A stretch of DNA of 64,000 bases from positions 112,406,001-112,470,000 of the forward strand of contig OZ296649.1 of assembly GCA_965655095.1 (NCBI GenBank), read 5' to 3'. Position numbers and translations under genes: made by a program. The notes under the pieces are model-generated. The model worked only from the letters and a program-made list of their open reading frames with translations, was not told the origin of the DNA and made no database searches. Source of the DNA: Haplodiscus bocki (Eukaryota). This document shows positions 15,094-62,281 of this stretch, in pieces. The first letter of the stretch is position 1; each line of letters begins with the position of its first letter.

Positions 15094-15666
15094 TCAGCAA
15101 CTACTGTCAACATTGATGGAAGTTAAAATAGTCAACATATGGGAGAACGAGGGTCTGTTTATTGCGCACTCTTCCCAGCACTTCATCATAATTTCTGCCA
15201 CTTGTGGGGGACAATCTATCGGAGGCGACAGCTTCAGTTCGCCCACAGTCATTCCTTTCAGCACCTGTTCATTGGTCAATTCTTGATAAGGCAAAACTCC
15301 CAGACTGAAAATTTCCCAGAGTGTCACCCCAAAGGAGTAAGCGTCACTCATTTGGGAGAATGATTCATCGTATACTGCTTCCAGGGGCATCCATCTGAGA
15401 GGTATGAGTGCGTCATGATACTCGAAGTATTCTGACCGGTAGACGTCCTTGCACAAAGAAGCATTTGATAGTTTGACACCTAAATCGGCTGTGAGAAGGA
15501 AGTTTCTGGCCGCAATGTCTTTGTGCACGAGTTTATGATTGGCCAAATACTCCAGCCCCCGAAGTGCTTGGTAAGCGATGTGCAGTTTGTGTGTTAGTTC
15601 AATAGCAGGAGCTTGAGGCAGCCCACTGTGTCCTTTGGTTGACATCAAAAAGCGCTTCAAGTCGCC
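15094..15666 (-). CDS. PTK7: PTK7 coding exon 14: kinase C-lobe and stop
   Basis: Acceptor tttag|GGC GAC at 15667/15666. Encodes GDLKRFL...HKDIAARN...PLRWMPLE...SDAYSFGVTLWE...CWEE..RPSF...DSSC*. Confidence 0.97.
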   Translation of the reverse strand, partial: GDLKRFLMSTKGHSGLPQAPAIELTHKLHIAYQALRGLEYLANHKLVHKDIAARNFLLTADLGVKLSNASLCKDVYRSEYFEYHDALIPLRWMPLEAVYDESFSQMSDAYSFGVTLWEIFSLGVLPYQELTNEQVLKGMTVGELKLSPPIDCPPQVAEIMMKCWEECAINRPSFSHMLTILTSINVDSSC

Positions 15667-18600
15667 CTAAAACAAGTAAATCAAACCATAAATTGATCAC
15701 AAGTTGGGGTCACCAAATACATGCAGTAACTCTGCAAATTTCTCATTCGATGACATTTGTCAATAGTTGCCGAAGATCTTCCTCGAATAACAAAGAGATG
15801 GACGCTTTGTTAATAATGATTGTAATTTTTCACAAAACGTTTGCTGTAAATAGAGCATCCAATTTTGAATGTTAGATTTACCCATTCAGTGTACTCGAAT
15901 ATCAAGTACAAAGGGTCCGTCTCAGTGCACACTCCGAGTAGTCGAGTAACATTGACACACCTCAGCTGTGCATACTGCTCCATCTCAACCTGGAACTTCT
16001 CCTGAAACAACAAACTAATATTCAAACAACAGCCCAGATGTAAAAGGATTCATTATGTAATGCAATCTGATTCCATATTCAACATTGGGTTGGATCTTTG
16101 GAGCAGTATGAAAATGACAGATAGTCACTTAAAAATTCACCAAGACAATTCACATACAAAATGAAAGGCAGACTGTAATCAAAAATCAGCTATGAATGCA
16201 TCAAGAAGTCAAGGAAGTCTTCCAACCTGTAAGTTCTTCTCCTTCTGCAGGAGCGACTTCACCATCACTAACTGCTCTCCCGAAGGAGTGGGAGACGAAC
16301 TAGCAGAGCCGGCGGTACTGCGTGGCACAGAGGAGTCGTTGAGATGCAAGCCCTGAGCAACGGCTAGAAACACGTCTCCATACTCGCCTCTTCCTAGTAG
16401 AGAGGTTGTTTGCAACTCTTGACGAGGAAATTGTAGCTTTTCTACATTCAAGTTCCGCCTTTGCAAGGGCATCAATTCTCTCGTTGGACTAAGGCGACCA
16501 TTTGCATTGACTAAAGGCTCGTTCGCTCCATCAGGGACACCTGCTCCGCCTTTCTCATCCCCGTTGAGTCCTCCGTTTTTGTTTAGCTGTCTGTTTCTAC
16601 TGGCAAGCCTTTTCCTGCGGCAATATATGGTTAAAGCTAACATGAAGAGAATGTAGCCGACCGCACAAGCGACTGCGATTGCAATGGTCCTCATGCTCTG
16701 GTCTCCTGATGCTGAAACAAACTTCCAATCAAAACACATAACATTACCCATCCTTGATAAGTACCGTTAGGTGAAGTATCTCGGTGGCATTTCAGTAGCC
16801 CGAAAATAATTTTCTTTCGGAATGCACAAATCACAAAAAAAACTATTTTTTAACTTGATTTTTTGAGCAGAATCGGAAATTACTTCGGAACGTTTTCATT
16901 AATACGTATTCTCCGTTTCAGTTACAGACTTCAAATTTTTACCTCAAGGTTCAGATTTACAATTTGAAATAGTGAAAATAAACAGATATTTATTTATCTC
17001 AAACATGTTTTCACCTGAGCTGGCAGCAACAATGAGTCGAGCCTTTTTCGTTGAATTAAGATCCTGGTTGCCATAATTGAAAGTTCTGTTGAAAATGCAC
17101 CAGTATTTGCCTTGATCCTCAGGTTGCACATCTTCGATCACCAAAACTGTACTGTTCACAATCTACAGCACAAATCACCATTCATTCTCAAATTTGTCAT
17201 TATGCTTAAGCATCCTTAAGAAGCTAGTTAGTCTTTCTTTTAGCTTCCAATAACACGAAAAAGATGAACCTGATCGGCATTTTAGGAAACCATGATATTT
17301 GTTTTCCAAACTCTTCTTGTATTCAGAAGCTACGTGCTAAGAATTTTGCCAAAACAAAAACGTTGATGATTTGCACGACAGTGCATTTACTTCCCAATTC
17401 ACAAATGTCAATTACTTGATATCTGCTTGCATATATTGTTATTAATTGATAACAGCTTGCAGAAAGATTGATGATGCCTTCCTCAATTACAGCAAAAATA
17501 GAAACTTGATTTTTTTGCAGCAGCAGGGAATGCTTTCTTTCAGCAGCTTTTTATGTTGAGCAAAGCGTTAAGAAGAATGAACGGCAGAAATAAATCCGTC
17601 ATTACATTCAACTCGAAAGTTAAAGTTTTTTTTTATAGAAATTACAAGCAACAGGATTTTAAAGTGGACTGGTTATTTAATTTGAAATGTACACGTGCCT
17701 ACTTCGATTAAAAGTCAAATATTTTCTGATACATAGAGTCTGAAGACAAAGTCAGTGTTACAGTAACGTTGCTATTTTCAAGCCTTTCTTCCATTTTATT
17801 GATGAGCATTGATCCAACCAGTTGGTTACTGGAATTCGGCCGACTTCAAAAAGGATTTCATCAATGGATATGAATTAGCTCAACGTTTCATTTTAACCGC
17901 ATTTCGTGTATTCTTACCAGTGAAATCGGGGAACAACACAAAGACCCAATCTTTAGCAAACAAAAAAATAATTTCAACAGAAATCACGTTGATGTGGATT
18001 TGTTGCCATGCATGGCACATCATCATATAGCGACTTTAAAGTCAACTTTAAACGTTGAAGGAGTTCAAATTCGAATGGAGTAATTGCGGTTTAAAATATG
18101 GAAAAGGTATTTCATACTTTGATACGAGGTGGTTTTAGTTCTAAGTTTGCATCGTCGGAACTGTTGGTAAGTGCCATGAGTTCGATCCGTTGTTGTTGCT
18201 GTTTAGCAGCAATCACTTTTTCCACAGGCTGCGGAGAAGAGCTAGGAAAGGCCTCGTACCACCAGCGAGTGTCAGGCTGATCGTCACTGTTCATCAGTTT
18301 GGGTTCACAGCTGAACTCCACTCGGTCTCCCTTCGCAACTGTCTGATCAACGGGCTCTTTTTTGATCAACAAGGCAACTAAAAATGAAAAAAATCATTCA
18401 TGTTCACTAAATTCACAATAAATGAACATGAATACAGACATCATCCTCATCATTGCTTGAGTTTCATGTTAGAAAGACTAGAATTTTGACACAATCGCAA
18501 AAACGACAGTAGGCTACCAATCCAATTTTCACAGATCATTCAATCTTTTCAATCGAATACTACCTGGAGAATCAAGCCAATCGGTATTCAGCAGGGACTT

Positions 18601-21600
18601 GATTGAATGTTCCATAGTTTTCGAAAGTTCAACTTTTTTGCTCGTTTATCTAGCTACCACGCCACCGAACACGTTGTGAAACACAAATGATGATAGTGAA
18701 ATAGAATCAAATTTTGACCCTAACAAAAACTTCACTTGGTTTCGCAAATGCTCTCAATCAAACGTGTCCGACGAGCAACATCTTGCATCAAAGTGCTCAC
18801 GTGCCATAAAGCAGGCTACCCCTTTTACCGAATGCCAAACAACAACCTTAATTTTCGCAGTTAGACAGCTTGCCGATCCAAGATGAGCAAAGTCTACGCC
18901 TCGAGATTACAAAATCTCATTTATGAGATCAAGACAAACTCGCAGTTTACCCAACCTACCCACTAACTCCGTTCCGACCACATACATCATTTTGACTCTA
19001 TTTACTAGAGTGCTTCATCAAAAAACTGGACTGGACTCAGATTTCATACATGAAATTATAACATTTCACCCAAAAATTTCAGCACGTTATGAATTTGATT
19101 CCATGCGTACACTTACACTCTTTCAGCCAGGATATGCGAGCGGCGCCAAGATGGTCCCCAGGTCTAAACTTCAAAAGCGAAACTTGGGCATCATTTGTGG
19201 AATTTGTGAATTCCGTAATTCCAGGAATGCCCTTATGTTTCACATTACGACCGGCGAGCGGAATTGCAATATTACTTGTGAATGATGAATACATGTAATA
19301 AATATATTATATCGAGGCAGCATGTTGGGACGAGCAGATCCCAGCAATCAATGACTCCTGCTTGACAAGGCAGCAGGCGCATGACGTATTGAGATCGCAC
19401 AAACTTTGCCGGTCGGCCGAATAAATTAAGTTAAGCAACTATGTATGTTACACATGGACCGGATCGGGTCGAGCAGCCGAACCGTTCATTAGAGAAGAGT
19501 GTATATTATACAACTTACATACAAGTTCTTCGCTAAGTGAGGTATAAAACACTCAATGGTGGTCATGTCGGCGGCGGCGGTGATACATAAAGGAGAGAAA
19601 ATTGGTCATAAACTTGATTTACGAGCACTCTCTTGTCATGTTTCTCATTCTTTCTAGACAGCTGCTTCTACAACAAAAGCGGCCGCCTGATCACTACAGC
19701 ACAACTGCCATGGTGTTTCTCAGTTCCGAAAGAGCGTAGCTCCAGCAGAAAAGACGCGTCATTGGAAGGTAGAACCAGTGTACATGTAAGGTACCTGCTC
19801 TGCTGTAGTAAGTACATAACAAGGCACGCAGATCACCACGCCGCCGTTAATATCCAAGCCTTATCCCGATACTATCTGCCGACAATTGGACGGGACAATG
19901 TTTTCCGTGGATCTTCTATATTCCACAGCTACATTTGACATGGCTAGAATAACATTTGGACTACAAACAATCCCACGAATACTAGTACATACTCTTGACT
20001 TCTATTGTTGTTCATAGTACTTACTGTACAACAATACAAAATACCTACTGGACACACTGGTATGTTTTTCAGACTGTTGGCAACCAAGTCAGTCTTGGTT
20101 ATGGCTAGTTAGCTCAACTAACAGTGTCTTGAAGTGAACGAAGAAAAGAACAAAGGGGAGAAGAGATTAATGATAAAGAAAATGAAAGAAAATTGGGCAG
20201 CCGAAGCCGTCGCATCATGACACAATGCCATCTGTAGCCTCGGGGGATTATAGGACATAAGTCAAACGTTTTATGCTTGCTGGCTTTTGAGACTTGGACG
20301 GTTGAACTACAGTGCGCTAAGTGTTTATGAACTTTAGTCTTGTCGGCACTTGAGCAGTTACTCTGCTATTTTTAATGTACTACTTTAAACGCAGGGAGGA
20401 GCTTCTACAGCATGAACAATATTACTTTGAAGTTTGTGTTTAGGTGACCACTATTACCAAGTAACTTAATCAACACAAGTTGAAGAGGTTCACATTTTTT
20501 ATGATTCTGAAGGTTTCTTGTGTATGATTCATGTTTCAGGTTTCTTGTCTAATTTAATTACGATCTTCTTTCTTTTCAAAGGAACATGAAGACTGGACTC
20601 GATTCGACTCAAATTAGGAGCCAGACCAAGCTCTTGTTTTCAAAGCAGCTACTACCAACCACACATGAAAGACGAACCAATTTCGATGTTCAATGACACT
20701 GAATTATATTGAACAAAATTCAATTTGTCACTTAATGCTTCTGAAAAACATCAAACGCAACAGGATTGAAAATCGTTGAATTAGTTTATCTAATCCCCTA
20801 AACCTAAATTTGCACTCACAACATTGCGTGGCCGCGGCCTAAGATTCCTAATGATCCTGACCAAAGCACCGTAAATCAGCAATGACATGCTTCAGCAATT
20901 CTCCCGAGACAAGTTCTAAGCGACTATTAATGCCCCTACTAATTGGTCTCCTACAAGTTGAAGCGAAGCAAAACAATTCAAATAACAGCCTAACGGCACC
21001 AGCGAACGGAGTCCCGCTCCGATCTCTGCTCTGGCCGGTGATCATGAAAACAAACCAACTTCCAAAATTCATCGCATTTTGCAAAAGTGTTGAAATTCGT
21101 CTGCCAAAAAATTAACTTCAAACATCTTGTTGACCAACAGCATACAGCATCCTTTCACAGCTTTTGATGATGAAAGCAATCATACAATTTTCTACCGACT
21201 TTTCGCGCAGACAACAGGTAGCCGCTAATTACTAACGGAAAGTGTAAGAAAAGGGCCGATCAAACCATCAGTTCAGACCAAGAAAGTAACTCATAATTGA
21301 TATATTCATTTTATAGCTAATCCACAACCTTCGAAGTTTCAAACTATATTGTCTGTCATGATAAGAAAAAATTGCGTTCGCATTTTCTATTAAATTTGCT
21401 CCAGAATTCAATTCAATTCAGAATTTGTAGAACGCTTTATAGAATCGTAAATCAGCATTGAAATAATTCCAGATGTTTGTAAATGCGATTCATATCGAGA
21501 CTGCAATCGCTAAGTGGTTCATCGCGGTATCAAAAGCGTATTCTGCTACCGAAGCAAGAGCATAATAAAAAGTGCGATAATCGTTTAAATAGTTGATAGA

Positions 21601-24600
21601 AATTAATTTCAGATCTCAAGGTTCACTCTTCAAAATTAAAACGCAACAACTGAAGTTTTTGATGAGGTTTTTCAAAAAAACACCCAGAAGGCTCAAATTG
21701 GCGCTGCTCCTTAAAGTTCTAAATATTCTGTGGCCTATCAAAACTTCTGTTTTCGGTATACTTAACTCAGAATCATATTCTTGGAGGGGTTTATTGCGAA
21801 CAAACATTTAAAATTTTTAGTCTATGCAGAAGGGATCAACCCTAAAATTTCTGCAACAAACCTTTTCGTAAACTTTTTGTGATTGAAAAGGGGCGTGGTC
21901 GCGGACTTTGAATATTCCATTGTCAAAATTTTTTCAATTTGCGCAAAAATTAGATCACGAAAACGTTTTGCCCTTAAATTTGCTTCAGTGTGTACCTCCC
22001 AAGCTGTTTGTCCTTAAAACACGATGCCTTTTGAACATCAGGATCACAAGTCATTAGGAAACGCTCAACTTTTTTGCTTGTCAGAATTCACATATACTGA
22101 AAATGGTTTCATTTGAGCTAGATGCTAATGCCTTCTAGGTAATCGTTGGGGTCTGACTTAGCCCTATTTCCTATAATTCTGTAGTACCTGTGAGTTCCCA
22201 TAAAATCCACGGTGCTTCAGGGATCCCTCGATGAAGTTTGGCCCTATTGTTGGAAATTTTTCAATTGCGCTTTCCATTTTTTTGCAACGTTCCTCCGTGC
22301 CACCCGTTCCCGAAACACTTGACTCATTAAGGAATTTGGGAATGTGATGGTGGAAGTTTCCCGAGGAAGTTGAATAAATTTTTACACTAATTATTTTGCC
22401 TCCTTACAGAGCTTCACAGATGGTTAGTAGGATGCCTCCTTTGCTCCAATACCGTTTTGGTGTCAAAGATGTTTCCAAATAACTACAGCGTAGCTTGAAG
22501 TTTTCAGAAATTTTCCTATTTTATGTGCTCCAAGCGCTTTTTCAAGTTTCCCGTTTGCCCCATATACAGCTTCGGGAGGATTTCAACATTAACAAGCTGA
22601 GCACAGCTCAAAGTAGGTGCTACCCATGTGTCGGGCACGAAAATTTCAGTAAACCATATCACGAAGAAAATTTAAATTTCTATCGCACAGTACTAAAAAC
22701 TTTTGTAGGGAGACCTTTCGGTGTTTCTGATTTACAGGGCGAGGGGTATCACGATTTTTGCACAAAATTTTTTATGAAAACTTCTGGGTGTTTCTGGCTT
22801 TGACCATTTGTGGGGCGAAAATTTCGGTAAACCATAGAGGAGGTATCACAAGAAAGATGTCGAAAAGTTTTCGTGTCAAAAAAATTCGTGAGGGGGGCCG
22901 TTACAGTGTTTCAGACAGTTTCTGCTATCGAAATTTATACATGAAGGCGGGGGGTCACGAATTTTGGATAAATTTTTTTTTGTTTCACTGCCGAAAATTT
23001 CGAAGGCACATTTTGAACTTTGTGAGTAATTGCCCGTGCATGTTATAGACTGTACTTTCATGCTTTAAAATTATACTTTCATGCTTTAAAAAAATATGGC
23101 AGGGAAAAAACATAAAGTAGACAATTCGTTGTGATCTTGAACAAAAAGAAACTAACTACAAAAGTCGGCTTTTTTACTGAAGTAAAAACGCCGACTAAAA
23201 AATTTCAAACGTACGAAAAGAATTGGCTATAAGTAGTTTTGAAGTTTACAACTTTGCCAAAGTGTAGAAAATGTTTCGCACCCATAGCGGTCTTCAGAGA
23301 AACAAGCCGAAAACAGCAGTCAGTTCGGCCCCTTCATTCGGAACAACATTTTCGGATGACTTTTGGATATAAGCAAGTTTCGGATAACTTTGGGTATAAG
23401 CAGTAAATCACAATTTGGGTGCTAGCAAAGTCACAAACACTCGACACTTCCGGTGCAAAAATTTGAGCCTTTGCAAGGGGCGTAGTCGCATTTTTGACAA
23501 TGGTTTTCGGGAAAATTTTGAAAAGAGTATTTTTGATATTTTCCTTTTCAGGTTTTGATCAAGAAAGCATACGCAACGAGTTGTGATAGAAATAATCCAT
23601 TTTCATCACTTGGATATTTTTACGTAAGCACAATATGCCCCTTCGGGGCTTGGCTATGGAAGCATTGAAAGTCCTGTTCTATCCGCCAAACAATACTTTA
23701 TGCCAATTTCAATCAAATGCAACAAAAACTTCCTCCTCTTTACCATTTTTCTATCAACAAAAAGTAAAACTCTGACTGAGGCTCTGATGAGCGATAATAA
23801 CTGGGTAATTAGCTTTCGACTCTACGCTCAATGACCAAAATCGGACACGTAGTTACGAAGCAAATCAATTTTGAAAATCGACAAGTCAACCATCCCTCTT
23901 TTTCGGTACTTTGGATCATTTTCTTTCAAAAATGAAAATGAAGGCCAAACTCTGTTCCATGGGCACCTTTTTTGATAGAAGTAGCTTTTGTGTGAGTTTT
24001 CAATGATCAAAATCGAATAATCAGAAACTAAGAAAACACATTAGCCAATACCAATCACAGTCAACCACCATTGATTATTTGTAATTTCTTTTTCGCAAAA
24101 ACTAAATTCGAAATTCAAAAAGTCTTCTAGATACCATTAGCTGTTGATTAGGTGTTCAATGACCAAAATTGGATATGTAGTTACAAAAATTGGGAGGCCC
24201 AACTAAGTTTCACAACATCATTTCCATTAAAACTAGTTCCTGAAGAGGCCCTCAACTGAATCAATTGTTTAAGTAGTTTCTGATAAAATTATTTGAGCAG
24301 TTGCTTCTGAAAACCGTCTTCATCTTCTAACCACGTCAGCAAGTTTAGCAGTTTTGTGCCAGTTTTTTTGCCCCCATTTCTTTTCAAAAAATGCTATAGA
24401 TTACTAAAAACTCGTAAAGTTACTCGTAAAATAGTCCAAAAACTTGACAGAAAGCCAAATTATCCCAGAGAAGAGAAAATTTGAAAAATGTATCAAAAAT
24501 AGGGAAAATAGAAACCGCAAATCATAATCTATTCGCCAGTGATTTAGCCCTCTAGCTATCAAACGTGGAATTACTGCTTGTTTTCTTGCCTCTACATGTA

Positions 24601-27600
24601 ACTCAGCTGACGTAACTGTTACGCAACAGTGTATTTTTAAATAAAATTCAACATTTGCAAGCCAGAGAAAAAACGGATACGCTTGGTTTTATTAGTATCT
24701 TCACATTCGCTTCCAATATTGAATAGGTGGCTAGGATAAATATGAGTTTGCGTTTTCGAGAATTTTTTGGTATACGCGAAGGAAATTCCAAAGTGTTTTT
24801 ATTAATTAAAGGTTTTATTGTTTTTTTTTGTCAAAAATGGCATCATTGAAAGAGAATTTCGCTCGAAAACTTTTTACTACGCATTTTGCGGAAAAATTGC
24901 TATCTTCCGCCTCAAAGAAAAATTGCTATATTCTGCCTTGAATTTTTGGCACATTTGCAGCATTTTAGAAGTTGAACTTTTAAAAGCATTTTAGAAGTTT
25001 TAGAACTTTCAAGTTTAAAATCGTTGGTAGGTTCTATGCACATGTTAAATGGATGATTTTCTTTTTAACTGTAAAATATAAAATAAATAATTAAAGATTA
25101 AAAATTAGCAACCAAATTTCGAAGTCATTTTGCAATTGCACTCGATGAGTTTTCTACTTTCACTTTTCCGCTTGTCGATATTCGACAGAGTTGCATGCGA
25201 CGAGTTTTCCCGACATTCAAAGAACTCCCTCATATAACCAGCCACTCTTTATCCTAAAGGCCCAGATAGAATTACTTTCAACAACGGTGTTAAAGTCCAC
25301 ATATTTCTTGTATTTAGGATGATGGAAGCGAGACGGAGCTTTCCAAAACGATCACATCTCCCTAGTTTTCTCCTTACTTGATAATCAACTGAAATTCCAG
25401 TGACCAATTTAAATTTTGAAGCAAAAAGTGCATCAATTTAGACAAAACTAGTCTGAAACCTTTACAATCTGATATGACATTTTCATACTTGAATGTTCAG
25501 GAGGTTTCGATTTTTAGGAGCAAGCGAAATAGTGACTTGAAATTAGTTCCCAACTTCCAACTTAACCATATAGCATTTAGAGACGGCAAAGCCATCTGAA
25601 TGCATGAAAATTCGACGTTGACACAGTGAGCATACATTTTGTGTTTGTGAACATAATGAACGCATGATTTTCAGACTTTCCACAAAGCAACAGAACTTGC
25701 GAATAGTGAAGAGGAAATAGTCAAGATAGACAAAATCAGAGTCCCATGCCCTCCAGAAATTCTGTCGGGAGTGAAAAGATCAATAAATTTATCAATATGC
25801 TTTACCTGGTCTTGTCTGTCGGCCAGCTTGGAAAGATTCACAAGATAGAAATCGATAGTCACACGCTGATAGATAAGCAACTCCTAGGGTAATGCAAAAA
25901 TCGAAACTTGTCCCCTATGTAAACTTTCACTTGTCTGTCATCAAAGCACTTGAAAGCCCCTGAGGCTCTGTTGTATGCTTAACTTGATGCTATAGGGCAC
26001 AATGAAAGAAGAAGTTGTCATGCAAGATAATGAAATATTCAAACAATTTTTTGGAATCTCAAACTCGCTTCTACTAAGTCTGTAATAAAGCATCCGAATG
26101 ATGCGGCAAACGAACTTTCAGAGATAAACAAGTCAAGAAAGCTGAATTCGGCGCCCTATGTACGTTTACTTATAATTTTTTCGGCCCCCGTTGATGTTTT
26201 GTCTTCAAGGAAATTAGACTATTTTTTTTCAAGAAAATTTAATATAACGAAGTAGTTTTGTCAAAAAAACCATCTCGTGCTGTTGGAAAATTTCGTTAAG
26301 AGAGAAAAATTGGTGTCTTGACCATTTTCAATGTTTTTTTTCTACCTCGTTTGGTTCTATGACTATTCTTCCCTTGTGAACGCTAATATATGGTACCGTG
26401 CAAAATATCTTCACTGTAATGGCCGGGCACTTCTTCATATGGAGAAAAATCGCCGAACAACATCTAGGTCGCCTAAAGTGAATTCTTTTATTGTGTTGGA
26501 ATAAAATGTAATTCGCAGTTAGATTTTGAAAACCTATTTCGTACGCGATGAACCGCCTGTGCTCGATCCAGGTTTTCATGGTAGCATTTCAAAAACTGAA
26601 CGTCTTCAAGACCTCTAAGTACAGACTAGTTTATGATACTAACTATCGTCAAGAACTTTAACGTTGAATTTCAGAGTCAGTTGCTCTGGTTCATTTCCTG
26701 GGTTCTCCAGTTTTGCTAGACATTGATAGATGCCGTTTTGCGATGCCGCTGCTTCCTTGAATACCAAATCTTTCGTCATTGTTTGATTTGGGCTAATGAA
26801 CACCCCACTTGGGAAGGTTCCGCTGTTATTCGCAGTCGCAGAAGGGACCGCTGACTCCATAAAGGACCACGAAATGCTGGGTGCCACATCTCCTGGGCCT
26901 TCGGCTTGGCACGAAATGGTGCTAGTCTCGTCAGCTTTTATGTAATGAACGAATGTTTTGTTTTCCCACACATTTGGGTTCAAAAACTTGAATCTCTCTG
27001 CAAAAACAGCAACAACACCGAATACATCATCTCATCAGTACACGAAGCTTATCTCCAATCATCAAGAGTGTAATCAAAATGTTAAGCAGCAAGAATCAAA
27101 CATGAAGCGACCGACATTAGAAGATATAAACTGCGGATTTTACAATCCCAGGCATGATAGAAATCCAATCCAAGTTCATGACATTTTTCATGCTTGCCCC
27201 GAAAAGCACCTTGATTGAGAGGAAACTCTTCTACGTGTTTCAACAAATGCTGATTCGGGACTTCAATTTGAAGCGCGTACCCTTCCATTACTTCCATTCC
27301 TTATTTTTGATTCTTACTTTTTCATGTACACAAAAATGAATTCCTTGCTATGCACATCACATTCTCCAGCATAAAAATCATCCTAGCAGTTGAAGAAATA
27401 GATTTTGTTGGTTGCTATTCTTGACAAAAATTCGTTTTCATCTTTTACATCCAAATGCTTTTGCGCTTTTCTGTTTGTTTCAATCCATCTTTTAAAGTGA
27501 CATTTAATAATTTACATGCATATATTAAATTTGCAGCTATATTAAAGACGCAAATCAAATGACAGCTCGATTCAGATTCCTTCAATGTGAAAATGGAATC

Positions 27601-30600
27601 TACCGTTCCAATGTCCGCTGTTCCCAGAGAGAACCCCAAAAGGCAGCAGCATCAACTTTTCCCTGCTCACGGGCAAGCAATCAATTGAACGACCGAGCGA
27701 GGGGTGACAATTAGCACAAGCAGCAGTAACAGTAAAGTGGAGCGATTTAGCAGCCGTGATGTGACAAAAATCAGTCGAGGTTAGCTATGCCAACTGAGCA
27801 ACATCTATAAAAGTTGAAAGTGACGGCGGCGGTGCCACGAGTAAAGTTTACACCCGGGGTTACATCAATGTTAACAGTATTTGGGGATCAAAAGGAGCAT
27901 TAAAAGCCGACTGAACTTCATTATCTTCACAATTTCCATTTTGATGCATCCTGATCCTGTTGGATTAATCTATGTTAATCACACAGAAAAACTTAATTAT
28001 ATTTTTTCTATGATTGATAAGATATGAGTTAGTGGACCAGAAGTAAAATGTCCTCAGTCAGTTGCATACAGTTTAGGAATAAGAACGAGCTAGTAAAAAG
28101 AGCAACGGATTAGTCAGTTTGCAGTAGATGGCAACTACAATAACAACAAAGCGGGCATGTTCCAATTAGGTTTAAAACGCGGGGTATTGGATTCAGATTG
28201 CATTATTAAAGGCCAGGTAAACATTACTCAAAATAATTACCCTTTGATTCCCGTTTTGGGGGAATTTCTACGTTATTTGCAACAACTTTTTCGCCGCCTT
28301 CTTCACCAGACGGGGAACTGTTAGATGAATAAGTTTGCAAGGCCGAGGGTGGAGGTTCATTTTCAGGGGAGGAATTTTGTGAAAGGGGGATTCGGCTGTT
28401 GGTAGAAGGAGTTAAAGCAATAATATTCAAAGCATGATTGGCGGCTTCATTAGCTGCATCATCATCATCATCAGCAACAGGTTGTAGGGAAATAGAAGAA
28501 GAGAAGGGGGAAGACTCTGCTGCCGCCGCCGTCGCAGCAGCAGAATCAGCAACATCCCGTCTTACCATCAGCCTTTCATTGGCCTCACTGCGGCCACCTA
28601 TTGAAGTAGTGTGACAAATAAGAATCGATGCTTTTCTTTATCCTTCTAATTCAACACAATGAAACAAGATCAAGAAGCACTGGCTGCTTTTATACCATTT
28701 CGTGCCATTATCTACCTGATCAATAATTAAGCCAAATAATTAAGTCACAAAGGAGGGTCTAAATGAAGATATGAGATAATGCCTGGGAATGAACTATAAA
28801 CATTTTTCTTTCAATCCTAATACACTAATCTTTGCATTTCCTCAAGCCATAGATGATTTGGCAATGAAAAATGCAACTTTGTGTAGGACACCCGAACAAA
28901 ATGCAGTGAACTCAAAATTTGTGACCGATTAACAAAATGAAAACTAAAACACAAATAAAGCATGCCAAAATATATAATAAATATCGCTAAGCACAATTAA
29001 CAGCAAATGATATAATTTACCCCAAGAGCCCGAACATTGATTGCCAAAAACTTCATATTTATCACCAAAAAACCTGAAAAGCAACTTAGACTGAGATTCC
29101 GTCAATTTTCACTGTGAAGCATTGTGTGAATCGAGCCGCCATTAAAATCAAAGGAATGTGAAAGGATTTCATGCCAGGTGTGTGTGACATTCAATCTTCC
29201 GCAATTGTGAAGTTCAGAATATTCGGGAGAAGCCATCTCCTGAAAATTCATACGCGCTTGGCTTTGGTTTGATCAAAATAATGAGCGTTGGGAATGGGAC
29301 CAAAATTCAGTGCACAGCTTTGTACAAATCATATTAAATAACCAAATAGTTGTCCCACCAGTTTCCCAAGTAATGCATTTCACCATTGCCCATTTGACAA
29401 TCTGCCCAATTTTTCTCAAATTTTACACGAACATTCGACAAGAATGACGAGCCTATATCAATTCGCCAGCATCTTTAAGTTCATCATGTGGAAATTCAAT
29501 CAATCATGAAAGCTCTTCAAGAAACCTGTTCTCAGTAACATTTTTGGTTCGCAGCATTTTGTTCGAGTTAGGTTTGTTAAGTTGATGAAATCTTAATCGA
29601 TTTCGTCGCAATTCATGTAATTGAAGCGTTTGCATTAACATGAAACACCCATTTTGTTTTGTCATTATTTTGGAAACGATAACTTACACAACATTAACCA
29701 AGCAAACGTCTGTGGTGACGTCGGCTATAGCTGACCACGGTTCTATTCTGTTGTTACTCATACAGAGTTTGATCATGACAGTGAGACGGAGAAAACCTTT
29801 TGGTTGTGTATTTCTAACTTGATTTCCACATGATTTAATTGGGGTAGGAAAACTTCTCGGTTGTAGTTAAAAGGGGCGAATTGACAAACGCTCTACCGCT
29901 GATTTCTTTATGTTTCGACAACAACTGTTTAAGAATAAAAAGACTTAGCCAGTCGGCTGACGACGACCCGGTTACTGTGCAAAGTGTTCTGTTTACATTC
30001 GTTCAGCCAATTAGGAGTGATTACAGCTTCTTGGTTATCAATGTGGAAGCGCAGAAATAAATACAGAAGAAAAACAACAACAGCTAATGTCAGTTAAGAA
30101 ACCAACAAAGGTTATACTGTAACAAAGGTTACACACTAATTTGAAGAAAATACAGATCTTAAAAGTGGTACCCTAATCGATTGAAAGTATATGATTAAAC
30201 TGGAAATTAAGCAAAACTCACTCAAGACATTAATGGTTAGAGTGTTGGACAGGGCAAATGAAGATATTTGAGAGAATTTGCCCAAAGCACCACACGTGAT
30301 TTTAACTGAATCGCCCGTTGAGGCATTTTTCAAGGTTAACACGTTGCCATTGTTTGATCTCTGCGATCGTTCGATCTGAAACCAACAGAGAACTCAATAA
30401 CAGACAGAAAAATGCAACCTCTACCAAATTTTTTAAGAATTGAAATGACCTATTTGGATTGATGTTGAATAGAAAATTGCGAAATTATTCACTATATTTT
30501 ATATTATAGCCGCGAAGTTTAAACCATTTCCAACAACTTCTTGCAGATGTCAATTCAGCGATAATGCTTATTTTGCTTCGATGTTTATGTTCCATCCAAG

Positions 30601-33600
30601 TCATCAAGAAAGTTCCAATTCCGCTCATACTTCTATATATTTATGAGTCATAAAGTAATAAAGTCATATAATAATTGTAGTCGTTGTAATCGATTAAGTT
30701 GATGAACTTACCAATGATTTGACAGCAGCGTCGGCATTATGATCGAAGGGTGTCCAATGAAACTCAAACAAGTCAATGTCACTTCCATTGGCCATGCACT
30801 GCAACCTCAACATTTCGCCCTCTTTGATCTCAAACGAGGTCTTCTCAGCCGGAGAAAACTTCACTATAACAGTTATTATCATCAAATCCATCGAACTAGC
30901 GACTATTTCAAACCCCAAACAAAACATTCAGGTTTCGCTAGTATTTACTCAATGTGACAATGAACTCAATTAATTAATCAAGTAGTTCTACAAATAAGGT
31001 ATTCCACACTTGAGAAAAATTATTCTTAAATTTTGCCCAGTCTCAGAAAACATCAACTTAGATTCTAACCGAAAATGATTTTAAGCAAAACACTCATTGC
31101 CTTCTCGTTTGTCCCTATATGGCATTCAAACTTCTCTCCAGGGATTGGCTTGTAAGAGGGTGGAAGATTCAACACAATTGCATTAGTTACGCTTGTCACG
31201 GTGGGTTCTCCGGGACGTGTCGAAGCACTTTCTTTTTCGCGCAGCGGCTGGTTATTTCGGAACCACGCGTACTTCGTGGGAGGTGGGTTTGCACTGCCAG
31301 CAGTGCAGATAAAGCTTGTCTCTGTAATGGTACCCCCACCGAAGTACATAGTATTGGGTTGCAAAGTTGGTGGATCCATGTCTAAAAAGCAAAACGTCAT
31401 TCTCTAATTCAAAAGCACTCCTTCATTTACACTTAACCTAAACCCATTTTCAATGTTGAGGAAAAACTAGTCATTGAGCATTGATCAAGTTATTAGACTT
31501 GACATTCAATATTGATGATTTCGGGAGAGAAACAAAAAACTGGGCCATTTGAAAGTAACTCTTGTAGATATTCTTCCACTGTTCCAAAATTTCGCGGTAT
31601 CTCCAGTCTATATTTCAAAAAAATCGCATCGCTCTCGGTGCGACCAAAATCCGGAAACTTGATTTGACTGACAGCAGTCCCAGATACAGTGTCATTCTGG
31701 TCTGCAGACCCTTTTGGACAAAAGGTGCTTTGAGATCCAAATAAACCCAGAAGGCTCAAGTCGGCGTCGCTCATAAGGCTCAGCATACTTCAAAGCGGGG
31801 AGGTTTTCCTTTTAGGGGAAAAGTTTTGGAGATCTATATCAGGTTATTTAGATAACACTTTGGACCGATGGATCTCATTTTTTTCCAAAATAAGTAGGCA
31901 GTTGGTATATTCAAGAACAGAGGCGAAGCTGGGCTTCGCAATACTTGCGCCAACGGAATGCTAGTGAACAAATCGAACAAGTATAGCTGATTTTGAAGGG
32001 GCCGTGGGACTACGAAAACTACTCATTACACAATTGAACAAATTTAATAAATTCAGTTAATTCTTATATAATCATTTCTAGGTACAAATAACAACTGCGA
32101 ACAACTATAGGAGTTAGTTAGTTCACTCTATATTTAAATAAAACAAGCACGCAAGCTGGAAAACAAGCACGCTTTTGCAAGAAAGCAAGTGCGCATAAAC
32201 AAAATCTAGGACACAAATGCGAGTTCTGAACGGATCGGAAAAAAACCTGTGACATGACACTCGCTTGCGCAAGTTAAAAACATAGCTTAGATTTGTGGGT
32301 TCGGAACGCATTTGCCCAACCCACTAAGCTACCGGGATACTATACGGACCAAAAATAATCTTCGCTAAAGCGGGTTCTTTAGCAGTAAGGCTGAAGAAAT
32401 CGAGCCCAGAATGAATCGCCTGAGTCGGGCCCCTCCCTGAGGCTCAAAGTAATCGTGACTCGTAGGAGGAGACATCAACATGTTCAATGATATCAGTCTT
32501 TTAGAGAAATTTCTGCATACCAGAGAGAGTTTTAGAAGTTCCTCGATTTTCCGCCAGAAATCCCGCAGCTTTTTTCAGCGCATAGTTAGAGTCGGCCCGA
32601 GTTTTAATAACTAATTATTAATAATGAAGCGTCCAAACTTTAATTTTCTGTCGAGGTTAGCGTATTATCGAGTTTGGCGGGTAATTACGTCATCGAAAAA
32701 AGCATGGACGGTAATTTCTTAGTATTTGCGTACAATCAAGTGGAGAAGAATCAAGGAATAGGTTGGGCCGATCAAGAAATTTTTTGATTGTTTTTCCGCA
32801 AAAAAAATGGAAACGTAGTTTTTTTTCCACGGAAATTCAGTATCCCAACAATAAGTTTAGGAATCCCTCGAATATCCATCATCGCGCAGCATTTTTGTGC
32901 GGATAATTGAGGCCGTGGCCAACTGGCAGTGGGGACGAGTTCGAGTATTTTAGTTTAAACAATAAAACGTCAGAGGTTTTTTGTCGAGGTTGGCGGATAA
33001 TTGCTCCCTCAAAAAAACTATACCAGCAAGAGTGGTGAAAACTAAACAAATTCGAAGGGTTGCCCTGTAGTTAATGCTTTGCAAAATTCGACTTTCTCAG
33101 AGCAAACGGAAAATCATTACAGCTAGCGCGTCTCACGAAAAAAAACACTTTTTTCTAAACCACCGACTAAGAACGAGCCACGCATAGCGTGGCATCTTAT
33201 TATTTTCCTCCATATTTATAACATAGGAGGAAAATCATCCGCTCAATGCAAAACTTTTTTTCACCCAATCTTCGCCAATTGATAATGTCCGATGGTCGAA
33301 ATCGGACACTTTCTGACCATGAGAAATTTTTTTACCACCGAATTGTTGCAAATTTGCCTCAGAAAGTGACTCAAACGGTAAGATTTTTCAAAACGATCAA
33401 AATTTGGGGTTTCTTTTTTGAAAAAAAAAGTTTTTCCAAAAAACCTTGAATTTTTACAAAATCGACAAATGTGGCAAATTTGCTGTAAAAGAGGTATCAA
33501 ATGGTGTGATTTTTTAAAAACGTCTTGTCCACTTTAACCGTGTTTTTTTAGCAAAAAATCAGAAAATTTTTAACGCTGGAGATATTGGAAAAAATGATAA

Positions 33601-36600
33601 AACAGAGTATTTTAAAACGATTTCTGTTTTAAAAGGCATCTTTACCGAAACGGGAAGGCGGAAAGAATGCCGTTCGTAGCCGATCATTTCGTTTTATGAC
33701 GCCTCGAATAAAATTGACAAATTTCAAAGTCTGCTCAACCCGTACAGCTCAAATACAGAGGCAAAGCCGAAATTCGCATCATATTCTGACTTTCCACTTT
33801 CAATAAAAAAGTTGACACATCAAAGGTCCTCAGACATTTTAAACTTGATCAGATACATCATTGACAATTTCAGTTGTATAACAAATGTCTATCAAAAGGT
33901 TTTTTGAAGAAGCCGAATTGAGACATGTGCCTGTCACACTGTTTTGAACTCGAAAATTTGACCTGTTGATCATGTAATTTTAAAATCATCATTCTGCAGC
34001 CGAATTCTAAAAGATATACGTAGTAAAACAACACAAAAATGAACAATCGGGAGTGTCCCAAACAGAAGTTCGTGTTAATCAACAGAGATTCAGAAAGTTA
34101 TTTCACTTTGCAATCATCAGGACTTGAGACTCTCAGTAGAAAATTCAAAAAGAAAGTTGCATAAGTTTGTTCAAATAAGTGTAAACAACTTTCGTCATCT
34201 GAACTCAAGGTGGTCATTTTCAAAATTTGAAATTCAGTGAAGGTGCCAATTTTGATGGTCGAAAGGCGGTGCGTGCCGATTAGAATGAAGTTCATGTTTT
34301 TTTCTGAAACTAAGCATTTTGAGCTCGAATTTGTTATATGTGACGTTTTTGGGGCCACCTAATACAGTGCACTCACTGTCTCTTGTATGAGCAAAAAATG
34401 CATGAAGCATTACTTTTAGAAATCTGTTGTTTTTTTTCAGACCAATGTTCAAAAATTTTTGAACCTTTCAGAACGCATAAATGAACAAACGCCCGTCAAA
34501 TTGTTCCAAAAAGGGCCTTTTTGAACGTTTACACTACAATTCTGATTTCAATTAAGTAAGCTCCAGAGCACAAATTGAGGAAATTGGCGGCTCATTTTCT
34601 CAAACCACAATGACTTCACGAAGAAACAGTAAAAGCAAAATTTTCTTTGACTTTTCATTAAGATTTTAATTGAATTTTGTTTTGAAATCGGGCCAATAGT
34701 CGGACAGTTAAGTCTATCCCAATTTTGGCCCTTTTTGATCACATTTGAGTTTTTCCGAAAACCACGTAAACTACGGAAGACACAGGAAAATGTTGATACA
34801 AATTCGAAATTTTGAATCTTTCCGAAAATTTTAAAATGTTCTAGAAAATCAACTCCTTAAAAACTAACGCTACTTAAGTGAATTTTCTAAATATTCAGTG
34901 ATAAAAAACTTTACCTTTTTCGCAGCTCAAAAGTCACAAAATTGTTAAACCTAAAAGCTTTTGGAGAGATTGTAAGCTCTACAACGGTGCATACGGAGGA
35001 CTGAGGCTTTGAAACTATAATACATGGATAACAACACATCACAATCTAGGAAGAACGAGAGTTTTCAACGAAAATGAACTTCGGGTGGATTCTAAAGTTT
35101 CATTTCAGCTCATTAAACCCGTCAATCGATTTAGTCGATCGAAAATCTGCAAAAATTCAAAGTGGTGAAAAATGAACAAGATGGGGGTCTCAAACTCTTT
35201 GACTAATGATTCGGTTTTCACCAAACCAAAACCTAGGTGATCCTACCAAGATTCTAAGAAGCTTTTGTTTAAACTTTTTCTAAACCTCTTATTTTTTGAG
35301 ATGTTGAGCTTCAAAAACGTCAACTGTTGCACAGAAGTTCCTCTGGTGGCTTCGGTGTTTGAAAAACTATACGCTAAGTTGCAATTCGAGCAATTTAAAA
35401 AACAAGACGCCCGGCTACAACCGGCATATTTTGCGCCTTCCCAAATTGGTAAAGATGCAATTTTGAAAGATGAAAACGTTTTTTCCTCGAAAAAAAACTT
35501 TTTCTTCACATTTTCTAATTTTTCCAAAGTTCAAAGTTTTCTGTTTTTTTTTGCCAAATAAACCTCATGATGAGGGCTGAAAAGACATTTTTAAGAAATA
35601 TCACCAAATGATACATACTCTACAGCAAATTTACTACCTTTACCGATTTTAAAAATGCAAGATTTTTTTTCGAAAAACCCATCTATTTTTTTAACAAAAC
35701 CAAATTTTGAACGTTTTGAGAAATCTTACTATTTTCGTCGCATTCTAGGGCAAATTTGTTACAATTTGATGAAAAAATTGACCTTCAAACACGTGAACAA
35801 CCGATGTTGGCTCCTTTACGTGAGCTCAATTGGCAAACATCGGGTAAAAAAACGCACCCATTTGAGAAAAATTTTGCTTTCCATATTTTCAAAATGGCGC
35901 AAAATAACAAGACGGCTGGCTACCACCGGCAAATTTTCCACCCACCAATTTTGTTAAAGATGCCTTCTAAGAAGATGATCGCGATTTCTTTCCAAAAATA
36001 CTCTTCCATCAAATTTTGTTAATTTTCCAAATTCAAAAAAAAGTTTTTTTTGCAAAGAAACCTGACAATCAAGGTAGAAAAGACATTTCCAAGAAATAAT
36101 ATCATTTGATACGCATTCAACAGCAAATTTGCCATCTTTACCGATTTTGACAAAAATTCCCGTATGTATTTGAGAAATCTTACTATTTCTGTCGCATTCT
36201 ATCGCAAATTTGCTATAATTTAGTGATGAAAAATTTTCGGACCTTTTACGTTTCTTCCCCCCCCCCAGCGGATTATTTCCCCCCAGTCGACGCTGTAGCT
36301 GCTGCTACCAGTGTACATGTATTTATTCAATGAATACGTCTTTCGCGAGTCAGTAGACAGTGCACACAATTCACAAATCTCAAGTACCTTCCAAGAAGCT
36401 CACTACTTGCTGAAGCTAGTTAAAATAAACAAACAGGTATTTGCAATAACTCTATTAAGCAAAAACTTGAACCATACTGCTCAGCTGAGCATATCAGCTA
36501 GGGGGGGATAATAATTTAATATTTTTGTCAGTAGGGCTGGGGAGGAAGAAACGGAAAAGACCCAATTTTTCAAATTCAGAATAGTCCCCCTGTCATTCTG

Positions 36601-39600
36601 CTCGGACAATTGGCAAGTAAATGTTAAAAGAAAACGCGCCACGTTGGGTGGATGATTTTCCTACGATATTATAAATTTGTGCGGAAAAAAACTGGACAGA
36701 TTCAAAGTGAGACTTTGAAAAAATAAACTGTAAAAGTCGTCCTCTTCACTTAAGAATACAGCCGACTCTAAAAGCATAAATGGAAGAGTACTCACAGCTG
36801 AATTTTTTTGGAATGGCGACTACTGCAACAACAAAAAGTGCTAAGAAAGAAGATGAGTACATGAGTGATTTGGTAAATCTCACAGATCCGTCAAGGAGAT
36901 TGCACAGTTGAGAAGACTTCCAAAAAAGATGAAAGCCAATGTTTTCCCTTGCCAGAATAAACAGGCAATGAACAAACATCAATGGTGCCGAGGGTGACTT
37001 TCACTTCATTTGATTTTTCGAGCTAATTAGAAACAAGGTGCCCGGCTAACTCCGGGATATTTTCCATAACACAAATTTTCTATGAAAAGGTTGAAAAAAA
37101 CTAAACAATATGCGTGTCTTTTTTTTCGATTCTTCTCAAAGTTCTGTCTGAATTTTTGATCGAATAAAACTAAATTGACTTTTTGAAAAACTTTTTTCTG
37201 CGATAAAAATCCGTTTACTGTGCAACTTGTGGAAAAATTCAGACTTTTCCCATTAATAAAAAACTGACTTAAAACTGAAAATTCCGGGTTAGTAACTCAA
37301 AAAACCCTTAAATTTTCGGCGAGATAGCTCATTTTTTGAATTAGACGTTTTTGGGTTGTGAAAGATGGAAAATTTCAAGTTCCTTCCGAGACCCGAACAC
37401 TCCACTTCTGTGATTCCACACGCACGCACTGCGTGCACCCCTATGCCAATCTTTCTTCCCAATCCATTGAGCTGCACATAAATTGCATCGTTCAATTGGA
37501 AAATTTCATAAAAAAGAAAAGAATGCTGAATGATTTCACTTCCATATACTGAAAACATGGGTGGAAAATAATTATTCCCAGGTTGGTCAAGCAGCATGTT
37601 TCAAGCTGGCTTTTACAAAATGATTAAACTTCTGGACTAGAACTATGGTCCACATCTCTTTCAGATGTCACATACAACTGTGCGATTCATTCAAACTTCT
37701 AGTTCAATCCACAGATCGAGATCCAAAGAAGATACGCAGACACAACACTGAGATATTCTGTAGATACGAATGATTGTCTGAAACGTTTCAAACGTTTTCT
37801 CCTCCAATTTCCGGCGGTTTTAGATATTTAATCATGTAGAGGACTTTCCAGAACATACAACAAAGTATAGCGGCTGTCAATTCACTTCAACAAAGAGATT
37901 TCAACACTGACGAGACAGCCAAAAATCGAATACATCAATCGAGAATCGTTTTCCGATACAACGGCTTATCGTCAAATGCTTCAACATCCGTTTGGTAACT
38001 TTGTTCTTTCTATTTGAAAGCCACTGAAATCTTTTTGATCAGTCGAAAATCTTAGAATAACTTCCCAGTAAGAGTCTACATTTCTGAAGCTCAATTTTCA
38101 AAAACCAAAACTTTTACGAAAGGAAACAAAAATTTCACAGTTTGCATTGGATGTGAGTTTGAGATCCCTATTTTCCACTCTTGTAGCCACGATTTCTCTT
38201 TCAGTGCGTCAATGTCCCGACTATTCAACTATTTTGAAAAACCATATCTCACAACCCGTGCAAGCTCGGTGCAATAGTTGAATGAATTTTTTCCACTTTC
38301 AAAAATGTCACATTTCTTTCAAACTTTTCGCTCAATTTCAGTTCTCAAAAAGCCTTGTTTTGCTCAATCTTTCACTCAATAACAGACAGTGCTGATGCCC
38401 TCATGATTGTACTTACATGTGACGTTGATGGGGCAGTTGTGTGCAATTCCTGATTTTGTGCTAATTAAGTCAATGCTCTTCAGAGTTCGATTAGCCGCTG
38501 ACACATACACTGATCCATTCCTTGGAAATACGCTGTAGCTAAAAAAATATTCTGATAGTTGCTGACCGTTTATTACCACATGTTTCCGTGAGGCATGTTG
38601 CCACAATATGCTCCCTGCCACAATGCCAATTGCAGCAAAATCCAAAACAATTTTTCAAACAAAAGTGTGCCAATATCCTAAAGAAAAACGCGAAAAAAAC
38701 CATAGCTATCCGAGGCAGATAGCACTTCGCAAAATTTTCCCAAGCTGGGGATAGCCAAACCCTTATTCTGTTTGCCCGCAAATTGGGAAACAAATCAAAA
38801 GGTTACAAAGTTACCTTAATATAAGAAAACTTTTTGAGGAAGAAATAAACATTTTGTTGGATATGCGCGTTCTTACCACTATGGTCCACGGGGTCTCTCC
38901 TGTACTCCCACGCAGCTTTGCTCCATTTTGAAAAAAAAATCTAAAACCTTGGAAAATGTCGTCCGAAAATGCGTTAAAAAACGAGCAATACAAAGAGTAC
39001 ACTTCGTTAAATTAAAAACTGCCGAAGTCCTCAAAATGCTGTTCTTTCAGGCACTACGGCATTTATGCAGTGTCCTGACATTTCAGTGCCAAAAATCCCC
39101 ACATTGGTCCGGTAAATGTACAGTCATTTCAATCCTATTTTAAGACTATGTTGACAAAAAAGCATTACAGTTCAATTTTAAGCTCTCAAACTAACTAAAA
39201 TTGTAGACAAAAAATCAAAACTTTCTTAGACTTGTTGCTTCACTTGTCAATCAAGACAGTTTCTTTCAAGACACCCTATCGAGTTATCAATCACCACAAT
39301 TGACACTTCCAGATATGAAAAGTGTGCGATGATAAATGTGTGAAAGTGAACATTATATTTTCAGGTTTTGAAAGTTGCTCGAAATTAAGCAATTCTCATT
39401 TTGATGACTTCATTTTCACTCCATTCAATAGGTTTCATTCACGTCACTCAAGTATTTGACTCCATCGTGCTGATTTTAATTAACTAAGCTCCTAACCGAA
39501 ATCAGCATTTTTGGAGCTGAAAATCTGGAAAACAACAAGGTTTAGAAAAACATAGGCATCACAGATGTAGGAGTAAAGAGAACCCCCCCCTCTAGCTTGG

Positions 39601-62200: not shown

Positions 62201-62279
<79 letters not shown>
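62201..62279 (+). repeat. (GAAA)n-(GA)n microsatellite
   Basis: Directly visible; explains the poly-ER ORF 62163-62354. Confidence 0.97.

Positions 62280-62281
<2 letters not shown>

Follow-up and report, generated by a model that had tools for sequence, protein, structure and literature searches.

We describe an additional exon in the PTK7-like gene of Haplodiscus bocki which, with a probability that we put at about 0.75, is a lineage-specific coding exon that arose in an ancient phase-1 intron between the exons of the fifth and sixth immunoglobulin (Ig) domains and encodes a disordered acidic hinge carrying a few short motifs. The stretch of DNA analysed, henceforth the window, covers 64,000 nucleotides of contig OZ296649.1 (positions 112,406,001 to 112,470,000), and all coordinates are given from its first letter. 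The gene lies on the minus strand (15094..43595), as do all the exons and motifs given below, and the additional exon (28241..28597, henceforth the spacer exon) is 357 nt long, in phase 1/1, and extends the protein by 119 residues between Ig5 and Ig6. It keeps its open frame and its splice sites in a second species, is absent from the orthologs inspected from other phyla, and bears no Ig signature. An earlier note, made from the letters of the window alone, had picked out this exon and proposed that it acts as a splice-controlled switch for shedding of the ectodomain, with an extension stalk or hinge as its own alternative; this alternative fits the evidence at least as well as the switch.

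The borders of the spacer exon and of its two neighbours were read directly from the window. The preceding exon, carrying the second half of Ig5 (Ig5b), ends GTCTTGA|gtgagt at 30222 in phase 1. The spacer exon has its acceptor at 28597 (caatag|GTGGCC, the preceding intron ending ...cttcaatag) and its donor at 28241 (AAAGG|gtaatt), and the Ig6 exon begins ttgcag|AGAGATTC at 26997, also in phase 1. With the spacer included, the protein reads ...TINVL-S-GRSEANERLMVRRDV...EIPPKRESK-E-RFKFLNPN; with the spacer skipped, it reads ...TINVL-K-RFKFLNPN, the split codon A|AG giving Lys. Across the exon 120 residues are read, of which 119 are a net addition, with no Cys and no Trp, a composition dominated by Ser (21), Ala (18), Glu (12), Pro (11), Asn (10) and Asp (7), and only two aromatic residues. 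Residues 13-14 (RR) and 115-116 (KR) form the sole dibasic pairs. The description of the exon in the earlier note is accurate in every detail that could be checked (357 nt, phase 1/1, Lys from A|AG on skipping), and the Cys-free, Ser/Ala/Pro/Asp/Glu-rich segment of 119 amino acids with dibasic pairs solely at its ends reads as it had claimed.

In all 14 orthologs inspected from other phyla, Ig5 runs directly into the V-x-[EKRQ]-[KTI]-L-K-F-x-P of Ig6. The skip form of the window (NVL-K-RFKFLNP) fits this ortholog junction, the nearest counterpart being RVLKRLQF in the Logan transcript protein P0113. Given that the junction is direct in the 14 orthologs and that the skip form is canonical, the spacer exon is best seen as a lineage-specific insertion. 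It lies at the same intron position as intron 9 of the mouse gene and would therefore have arisen inside an ancient intron. Two further statements of the earlier note hold up here, namely that PTK7 normally has no such spacer (true of the 14 orthologs) and that skipping gives the canonical receptor, since the skip form recreates a junction of the ortholog type.

An argument that the exon is coding comes from a related species, whose orthologous PTK7 locus lies on a 99.5-kb contig of a HiFi metagenome assembly in ENA (ERZ25074608 ctg180643, represented by the records L001 and L002). A word search with the spacer peptide gave a single match, the predicted protein P0001 on this contig, at 46% identity. 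The spacer exon of the relative (L001 10044-10367) is 324 nt long, has an uninterrupted frame in phase 1/1, and keeps the acceptor ACTTCAATAG|GTG and the donor |GTAATTA as in the window. Another contig, L003 (ctg182878), matches L001 at 97-99% identity along 13 kb, in which large indels occur, and adds two amino acid differences; it was therefore counted as the same species, and L001 and L003 probably stem from two haplotypes of the animal host. The precomputed gene calls on L001 and L002 contain standard stop codons, P0001 alone being truly open, and consequently the precomputed genes of that assembly were considered unreliable and ignored as models. The read-through of standard stops in these calls looks like the outcome of translating animal DNA with a non-standard code.

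The two species are far apart at synonymous sites, with a proportion of synonymous differences (pS) of 0.4-0.7 and an estimated divergence (dS) of about 1-2. Amino acid identity is 93-97% in the kinase exons, 96% in the transmembrane (TM)/juxtamembrane exon and 68-94% in the Ig exons (86% for Ig5b), and drops to about 50% in the spacer. At the nucleotide level the body of the spacer exon has become too different to align well and is only about 40% identical to L001, with several in-frame indels, against a mean of 53-55% for the flanking introns. The frame is nevertheless the sole open one of six in both species, the other five carrying 2-15 stops, and dinucleotide shuffles were open in the frame of the exon in only 0.29% of cases for the window and 0.44% for L001. 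In each of the two species the exon has a guanine-cytosine (GC) content of 48.5%, the flanking introns one of 37%. Over the alignable codons, the proportion of nonsynonymous differences (pN) was 0.37 and pS 0.63, with a ratio of nonsynonymous to synonymous divergence (dN/dS) of 0.375 (0.015-0.15 in the other exons), which points to weak but real purifying selection on the spacer. We conclude from this comparison that selection maintains the spacer frame and that it constrains most of the peptide only weakly, which is what one would predict of a disordered linker.

A different reading would place the stretch outside the PTK7 mRNA, as a chance open frame or as an exon or open reading frame (ORF) of a separate gene nested in the intron. 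It would account for the ATG-initiated ORF found at the spacer in both species (P0001 in the relative) and for the match of the stretch to genomic sequencing runs only and to no transcript, and several unrelated ORFs of 100-119 codons do occur in other introns of the gene. We consider it highly improbable, given that the AG and GT stand at identical positions and in identical phase in both species, that the frame stays open, with exon-like composition, across a body more diverged than the introns, and that it closes 2-4 codons past the donor in both. Judged by these features the stretch is, in our view, a genuine coding exon.

The host gene has 14 exons, including the spacer, and its model translates without a stop into a predicted protein of 1269 amino acids with the spacer and 1150 without it. 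The protein consists of a signal peptide, seven Ig modules, a TM helix, a juxtamembrane region and a tyrosine-kinase-like domain. The first exon (E1) lies at 43595-43241 and is followed by the exons of Ig2 (42756-42478), Ig3a (41350-41212), Ig3b (38538-38417), Ig4 (31381-31070), Ig5a (30863-30712) and Ig5b (30222..30375, with its donor A|gtgagt in phase 1). Downstream of the spacer exon come the Ig6 exon (26644..26997), which holds the whole domain in phase 1/1 and starts R-F-K-F-L-N-P, the exons Ig7a (18377-18118) and Ig7b (17162-17015), the TM/juxtamembrane exon (16711-16227), in which the TM segment reads TIAIAVACAVGYILFMLALTIYC, and two kinase exons (16001-15882 and 15666-15094). Ig3, Ig5 and Ig7 are each split by an internal intron.

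The identity of the gene as PTK7, also claimed in the earlier note, is borne out by the seven Ig modules, the TM segment, the pseudokinase signature and the closest matches. The last exon matches PF07714 (PK_Tyr_Ser-Thr) in Pfam with an E-value of 8.3e-48, and it shows the signature of a pseudokinase, HRD being replaced by HKD and DFG being degenerate (VHKDIAARNFLL...VKLSNASL in the window, VHKDLAARNCLI...VKVSSLSL in a fish ortholog and IHKDLATRNCLV...IKVSNLAL in Saccoglossus). Among single-domain PDB entries the top match was human PTK7 (6vg3, 147.8 bits), followed by ROR1 (137.6) and ALK (132). When the last exon served as query in an exhaustive HMMER search, the top full-length single-kinase matches were annotated PTK7 or otk, from Branchiostoma (50% identity), Saccoglossus (45%) and Acropora (46%), with further PTK7/otk matches from fish, Lingula, a sea cucumber, a crinoid, a gastropod, mites, spiders, insects and a barnacle. 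As no match of the kinase exon exceeded 50% identity, the gene belongs to a lineage without a close annotated relative. The kinase C-lobe exon of the relative harbors a 209-nt GT-AG intron (L001 18889-19097, CAG|gttaga...ctatag|G, phase 2) in the Arg codon of DVYRSEY; the window reads straight through at 15430-15442, a presence/absence difference between the two species.

The ectodomain is strongly diverged, to the point that tblastn with orthologs finds Ig2 only. A clear Pfam Ig match was likewise obtained solely for Ig2 (E 7e-10), those of Ig4, Ig6 and Ig7a being weak and mostly under the curated cut-offs. We built hidden Markov models (HMMs) from nine orthologs, one for each of the seven Ig domains, and these assigned Ig2, Ig6 and Ig7 specifically and left the spacer unmatched; the Ig6-specific model was the best for the exon after the spacer (17.3 bits). 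Ig1, Ig3 and Ig5 were assigned by their Cys/Trp pattern and by conservation in L001/L002. Since the exon that follows the spacer is Ig6 and the last Ig is Ig7 by these models, the spacer sits at the Ig5/Ig6 junction. In the Ig7a exon (18118-18377) there is in addition a low-complexity insert, AAKQQQQRIELMALTNSSDDANLELKPP, which is shorter and different in the relative, and the ectodomain in this lineage seems prone to indel-rich loops.

The domain count also settles whether the spacer could be a decayed Ig5 domain instead of an insertion. A global MAFFT alignment had set the spacer opposite Ig5 of ten orthologs, as such a reading would have it. Besides the spacer, however, the gene has seven Cys-bearing Ig modules (E1, Ig2, Ig3a+b, Ig4, Ig5a+b, Ig6 and Ig7a+b), the count being completed by a two-exon Ig3 that is conserved in L002; the Ig HMMs find no match in the spacer, and its peptide has no Cys or Trp and only two aromatic residues. 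The idea is effectively refuted and was dropped: the MAFFT placement had been caused by an incorrect Ig3 exon, and the upstream DNA of the relative showed the real Ig3a and Ig3b.

An AlphaFold2 model of the spacer alone had a mean predicted local distance difference test (pLDDT) score of 59.8 and a predicted template modelling (pTM) score of 0.21, and was coil save for a weakly supported helix at residues 3-26. Ser, Thr and Pro make up about 30% of the residues (35/118 in the window, 32/107 in L001), and no internal repeats were seen beyond short GAT and GCN runs; with this content and no tandem repeats the spacer does not look like a typical mucin domain. Comparison of the exon with the window itself by self-blast revealed no similarity that would indicate an origin from a repeat or transposable element.

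In the scenario that we favour, the spacer exon would have arisen inside the ancient phase-1 intron between the Ig5 and Ig6 exons and, when spliced into the mRNA, would insert some 110-120 disordered, net-acidic, Ser/Ala/Pro/Asn-rich residues between the membrane-distal Ig1-5 and the membrane-proximal Ig6-7. The segment would act as a flexible hinge or extension that lengthens the ectodomain and uncouples its two parts. Most of it would evolve almost freely, with in-frame indels, and a few short linear motifs would be kept, one of them, containing the RR pair, perhaps as a protease or binding site. Several observations weigh against this scenario. The call of disorder is based on composition and on a single-sequence model. 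There is a single independent relative, L003 being a haplotype-like copy. The differences at the three codon positions (42/41/52) show only a slight excess at third positions, so that the bulk of the spacer appears to be near neutral. Finally, no transcript match was found: the sequencing runs that hold the stretch were four, all of them genomic contigs from one study, in which the introns are spanned without joints. Word searches with the spacer, Ig6 and TM/juxtamembrane exons likewise returned only the ORFs of the window itself and one assembly of the relative, and no transcript-derived protein.

Within the generally diverged spacer some islands stand out. The best preserved is the motif ANERLMVRRDV (28551..28583, with the RR codons at 28557-28562), which is identical in amino acids in both species and matches L001 at 32/33 nt, the one change being synonymous, where the gene-wide pS of ~0.6 predicts differences at about 5 of its 8 synonymous sites. 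The first 60 nt of the exon as a whole are 83% identical to the relative. In the protein alignment a second island, EPPPSALQT (28332..28358), follows an N-x-S sequon shared by both species (window QNSSP, relative QNMSP), and the segments ANE..NH and NNVE are also kept. The KR pair near the C-terminal end (28251..28256, PPKR|ES) is absent from L001, where the exon ends ...NNVESETSKP and a K-R arises across the junction (SKPK|RFKF), displaced by about six residues. Each spacer end thus has a dibasic pair close by in both species, with the position conserved only for the N-terminal RR. For the two dibasic sites the one relative thus gives a mixed picture, RLMVRR being identical and the C-terminal pair displaced.

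These basic motifs are the foundation of the switch model, in which the exon is a regulated cassette. When included, a proprotein convertase would cut after RLMVRR and after the C-terminal KR, shedding Ig1-5, freeing an acidic peptide of about 100 amino acids and leaving an Ig6-7 stub; when skipped, the canonical receptor would be made, and the skip form does restore the canonical junction NVL-K-RFKF. Furin accepts sites that have an Arg at P1 and in which at least two of P2, P4 and P6 are basic. RLMVRR|DV, with Arg at P1, P2 and P6 and identical in both species, fits this rule and is the sole R-x-x-x-[KR]-R pattern in the ectodomain of 885 residues. RR and KR pairs are found in the ectodomain solely within the spacer, the remaining four dibasic pairs being all KK. 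RLMVRR|DV can thus legitimately be taken as a candidate for cleavage. Close to its C-terminal end the spacer has a K-R pair in both species (as PPKR|ES in the window and as SKPK|RF, spanning the junction, in L001), and the model can also draw on the unusual conservation of the synonymous sites of the motif and of a 17-nt intronic block upstream of the exon, a kind of conservation sometimes seen at regulated exons.

Several points tell against the switch. The C-terminal site shifts between the species, which weakens the idea of an excised peptide with two cuts, and PPKR|ES has basic residues at P1 and P2 only, with none at P4 and P6 (L001 offers KPKR|F across the junction). When the peptide is shuffled, at least two dibasic pairs come up in 11% of cases; their arrangement at both ends only is rarer (0.3%), a statistic chosen post hoc. 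The RR falls in the sole segment that AlphaFold2 models, at low confidence, as a helix. Phase 1/1 is the rule for the Ig exons of this gene, the 100-nt intron flanks are 41-45% identical and thus below the intron mean, and the body of the exon is poorly conserved, the opposite of the usual conserved alternative exon. The runs that match the stretch are all genomic contigs without joints. We regard the switch as quite unlikely, and the cleavage, the release of an acidic peptide and a function as Wnt decoy as conjectural.

The conserved motif contains another potential signal, GTAAGA (28560..28565, kept in L001), which would form an internal donor ATG|GTAAGA. Its use would reduce the spacer exon to 32 nt and shift the frame, yielding either a secreted Ig1-5 or a target of nonsense-mediated decay that lowers receptor output. 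Its fit to the donor consensus equals or surpasses that of most of the gene's 13 donors, and it lies within the 33-nt stretch that is 32/33 identical despite a pS of ~0.6; moreover, 1 + 32 nt ends in phase 0, from which the Ig6 exon would read RDSSF-stop, five codons in. The same letters, however, encode the conserved M-V-R, so that protein constraint alone may explain their conservation, and the excess of synonymous conservation has p = ~0.01 by a rough binomial estimate from two species only. Use of this donor is something that we only infer, the matching runs being all genomic, and such truncation seems very unlikely. Taking the two forms together, a lineage-specific, exon-encoded shedding module, in which a convertase site is exposed or an internal donor truncates the frame and the splice choice decides between a membrane receptor and a soluble Ig1-5 decoy for Wnt/planar cell polarity (PCP) signalling, is unlikely.

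Whether the hinge exon would be constitutive or alternative is a separate matter, in which the signals are mixed. All eight domain-boundary introns of the gene are phase 1, and the Ig2, Ig4 and Ig6 exons are also 1/1, so that in-frame skippability does not single out the spacer exon: its lengths in the two species (357 and 324 nt) are multiples of three with equal phases, as in those three exons. A further mark of cassette exons is that they, and about 100 nt of intron on their flanks, are more conserved than usual. Here, the upstream 100 nt are 41% and the downstream 100 nt 45% identical, with two exceptions to the low conservation, the first 60 nt of the exon and the invariant 17-nt block AAAGAAAAGCATCGATT (28623..28639), located 26-42 nt upstream of the acceptor. 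For regulated splicing would speak an evolutionarily new, symmetric exon with conserved first 60 nt and this invariant upstream block; against it, the phase rule, the poorly conserved flanks and a long, diverged exon unlike classical conserved alternative exons. On balance we lean, by very little, towards constitutive use.

Other parts of the introns are conserved as well. Blocks of 60-145 nt that are 79-84% identical between the species were found at 28872-28976, 29946-30051, 29603-29688, 27756-27831, 27473-27535 and 19543-19677. In each species they are interrupted by stops or frame breaks, and none of them matches Rfam; they could be enhancers or splicing regulators, and for 28976-28872, 30051-29946, 29688-29603 and 19677-19543, a reading as missed exons was ruled out by these stops and frame breaks. 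The strand of the window has four GCATG pentamers between 30400 and 26600, of which three are conserved at aligned positions in the relative (28965, 27519 and 27193), all in the introns flanking the spacer exon and one as TGCATG. GCATG is the core of the motif of Rbfox-type splicing regulators, and its conservation here is suggestive only, too weak to count as evidence of such regulation.

Beyond the gene itself, about 350 nt just 3' of the stop codon (14529-14872) are 83% identical to the relative, on a par with coding exons, and are probably a constrained 3' untranslated region. Rfam had no match in the gene region. Retroelement-like long open frames, of reverse-transcriptase or endonuclease type, lie on both sides of the gene (400-1650, 47800-50600 and 56700-57400), and a GA/GAGA microsatellite is located at ~62150-62350.

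PTK7 is a deeply conserved Wnt/planar-polarity co-receptor, its layout of seven Ig domains is near-invariant in animals, and in vertebrates its activity is tuned by shedding. The spacer represents a new variant of this domain architecture, a discovery at the level of annotation in a non-model invertebrate rather than a regulatory mechanism. It indicates that the Ig5/Ig6 junction, where an insertion of three residues leads to neural-tube defects in the mouse, can host a long linker, and the locus is a natural system in which to examine how the spacing of Ig1-5 and Ig6-7, or cleavage between them, affects signalling.

With PTK7/CCK-4/Otk/Lemon, the gene of the window shares seven Ig domains, one TM segment, the HKD kinase-like domain and an Ig5/Ig6 intron at the position of mouse intron 9; it differs by the extra non-Ig exon of 119 residues, present in 0/14 orthologs. 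Linkers of a comparable kind are known from other receptors and adhesion molecules: the acid box of FGFR, the MSD region of NCAM, the PAT domain of neurofascin and the variable exons of CD44 are disordered, Cys-free linkers, Ser/acidic or Ser/Thr/Pro-rich, on separate symmetric exons between Ig or FN3 domains. They change reach, flexibility, autoinhibition or glycosylation, and alternative use of the mucin-like or hinge inserts (NCAM, neurofascin, CD44) is documented. The spacer resembles them as a Ser/acidic-rich, Cys-free segment on a separate symmetric exon between Ig domains. It has no sequence relationship to them, and its moderate share of Ser, Thr and Pro and lack of tandem repeats also set it apart.

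Vertebrate PTK7 is shed by MT1-MMP and ADAM proteases, with a cut at PKP621|LI in Ig7 that gives rise to soluble sPTK7 (PMC11518688, PMC4007575). This provides a precedent for modulation by ectodomain cleavage with a soluble N-terminal fragment, although the vertebrate sites are near-membrane metalloproteinase sites, neither dibasic nor exon-encoded options, and here there is a candidate motif only. The closest parallel at the junction itself is the mouse chuzhoi allele of Ptk7, in which Ala-Asn-Pro is inserted after Leu491, between Ig5 and Ig6, by way of a new acceptor in intron 9 (PMC2930600), and whose link to MT1-MMP has been tabulated (PMC5380734); the three-residue insertion at this junction and the MT1-MMP link, both already invoked in the earlier note, are found in these sources. 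In both cases extra residues are added at the identical junction, via the acceptor side of the same intron. The chuzhoi insertion is pathogenic and three residues long, whereas in the present case a complete, conserved exon encoding 108-119 residues belongs to the normal locus of two species. If the spacer did turn out to be a shedding module, it would be the natural, conserved counterpart of the accidental effect of that mutation. The chuzhoi allele shows that the junction structurally tolerates insertions, though the processing of the protein can change.

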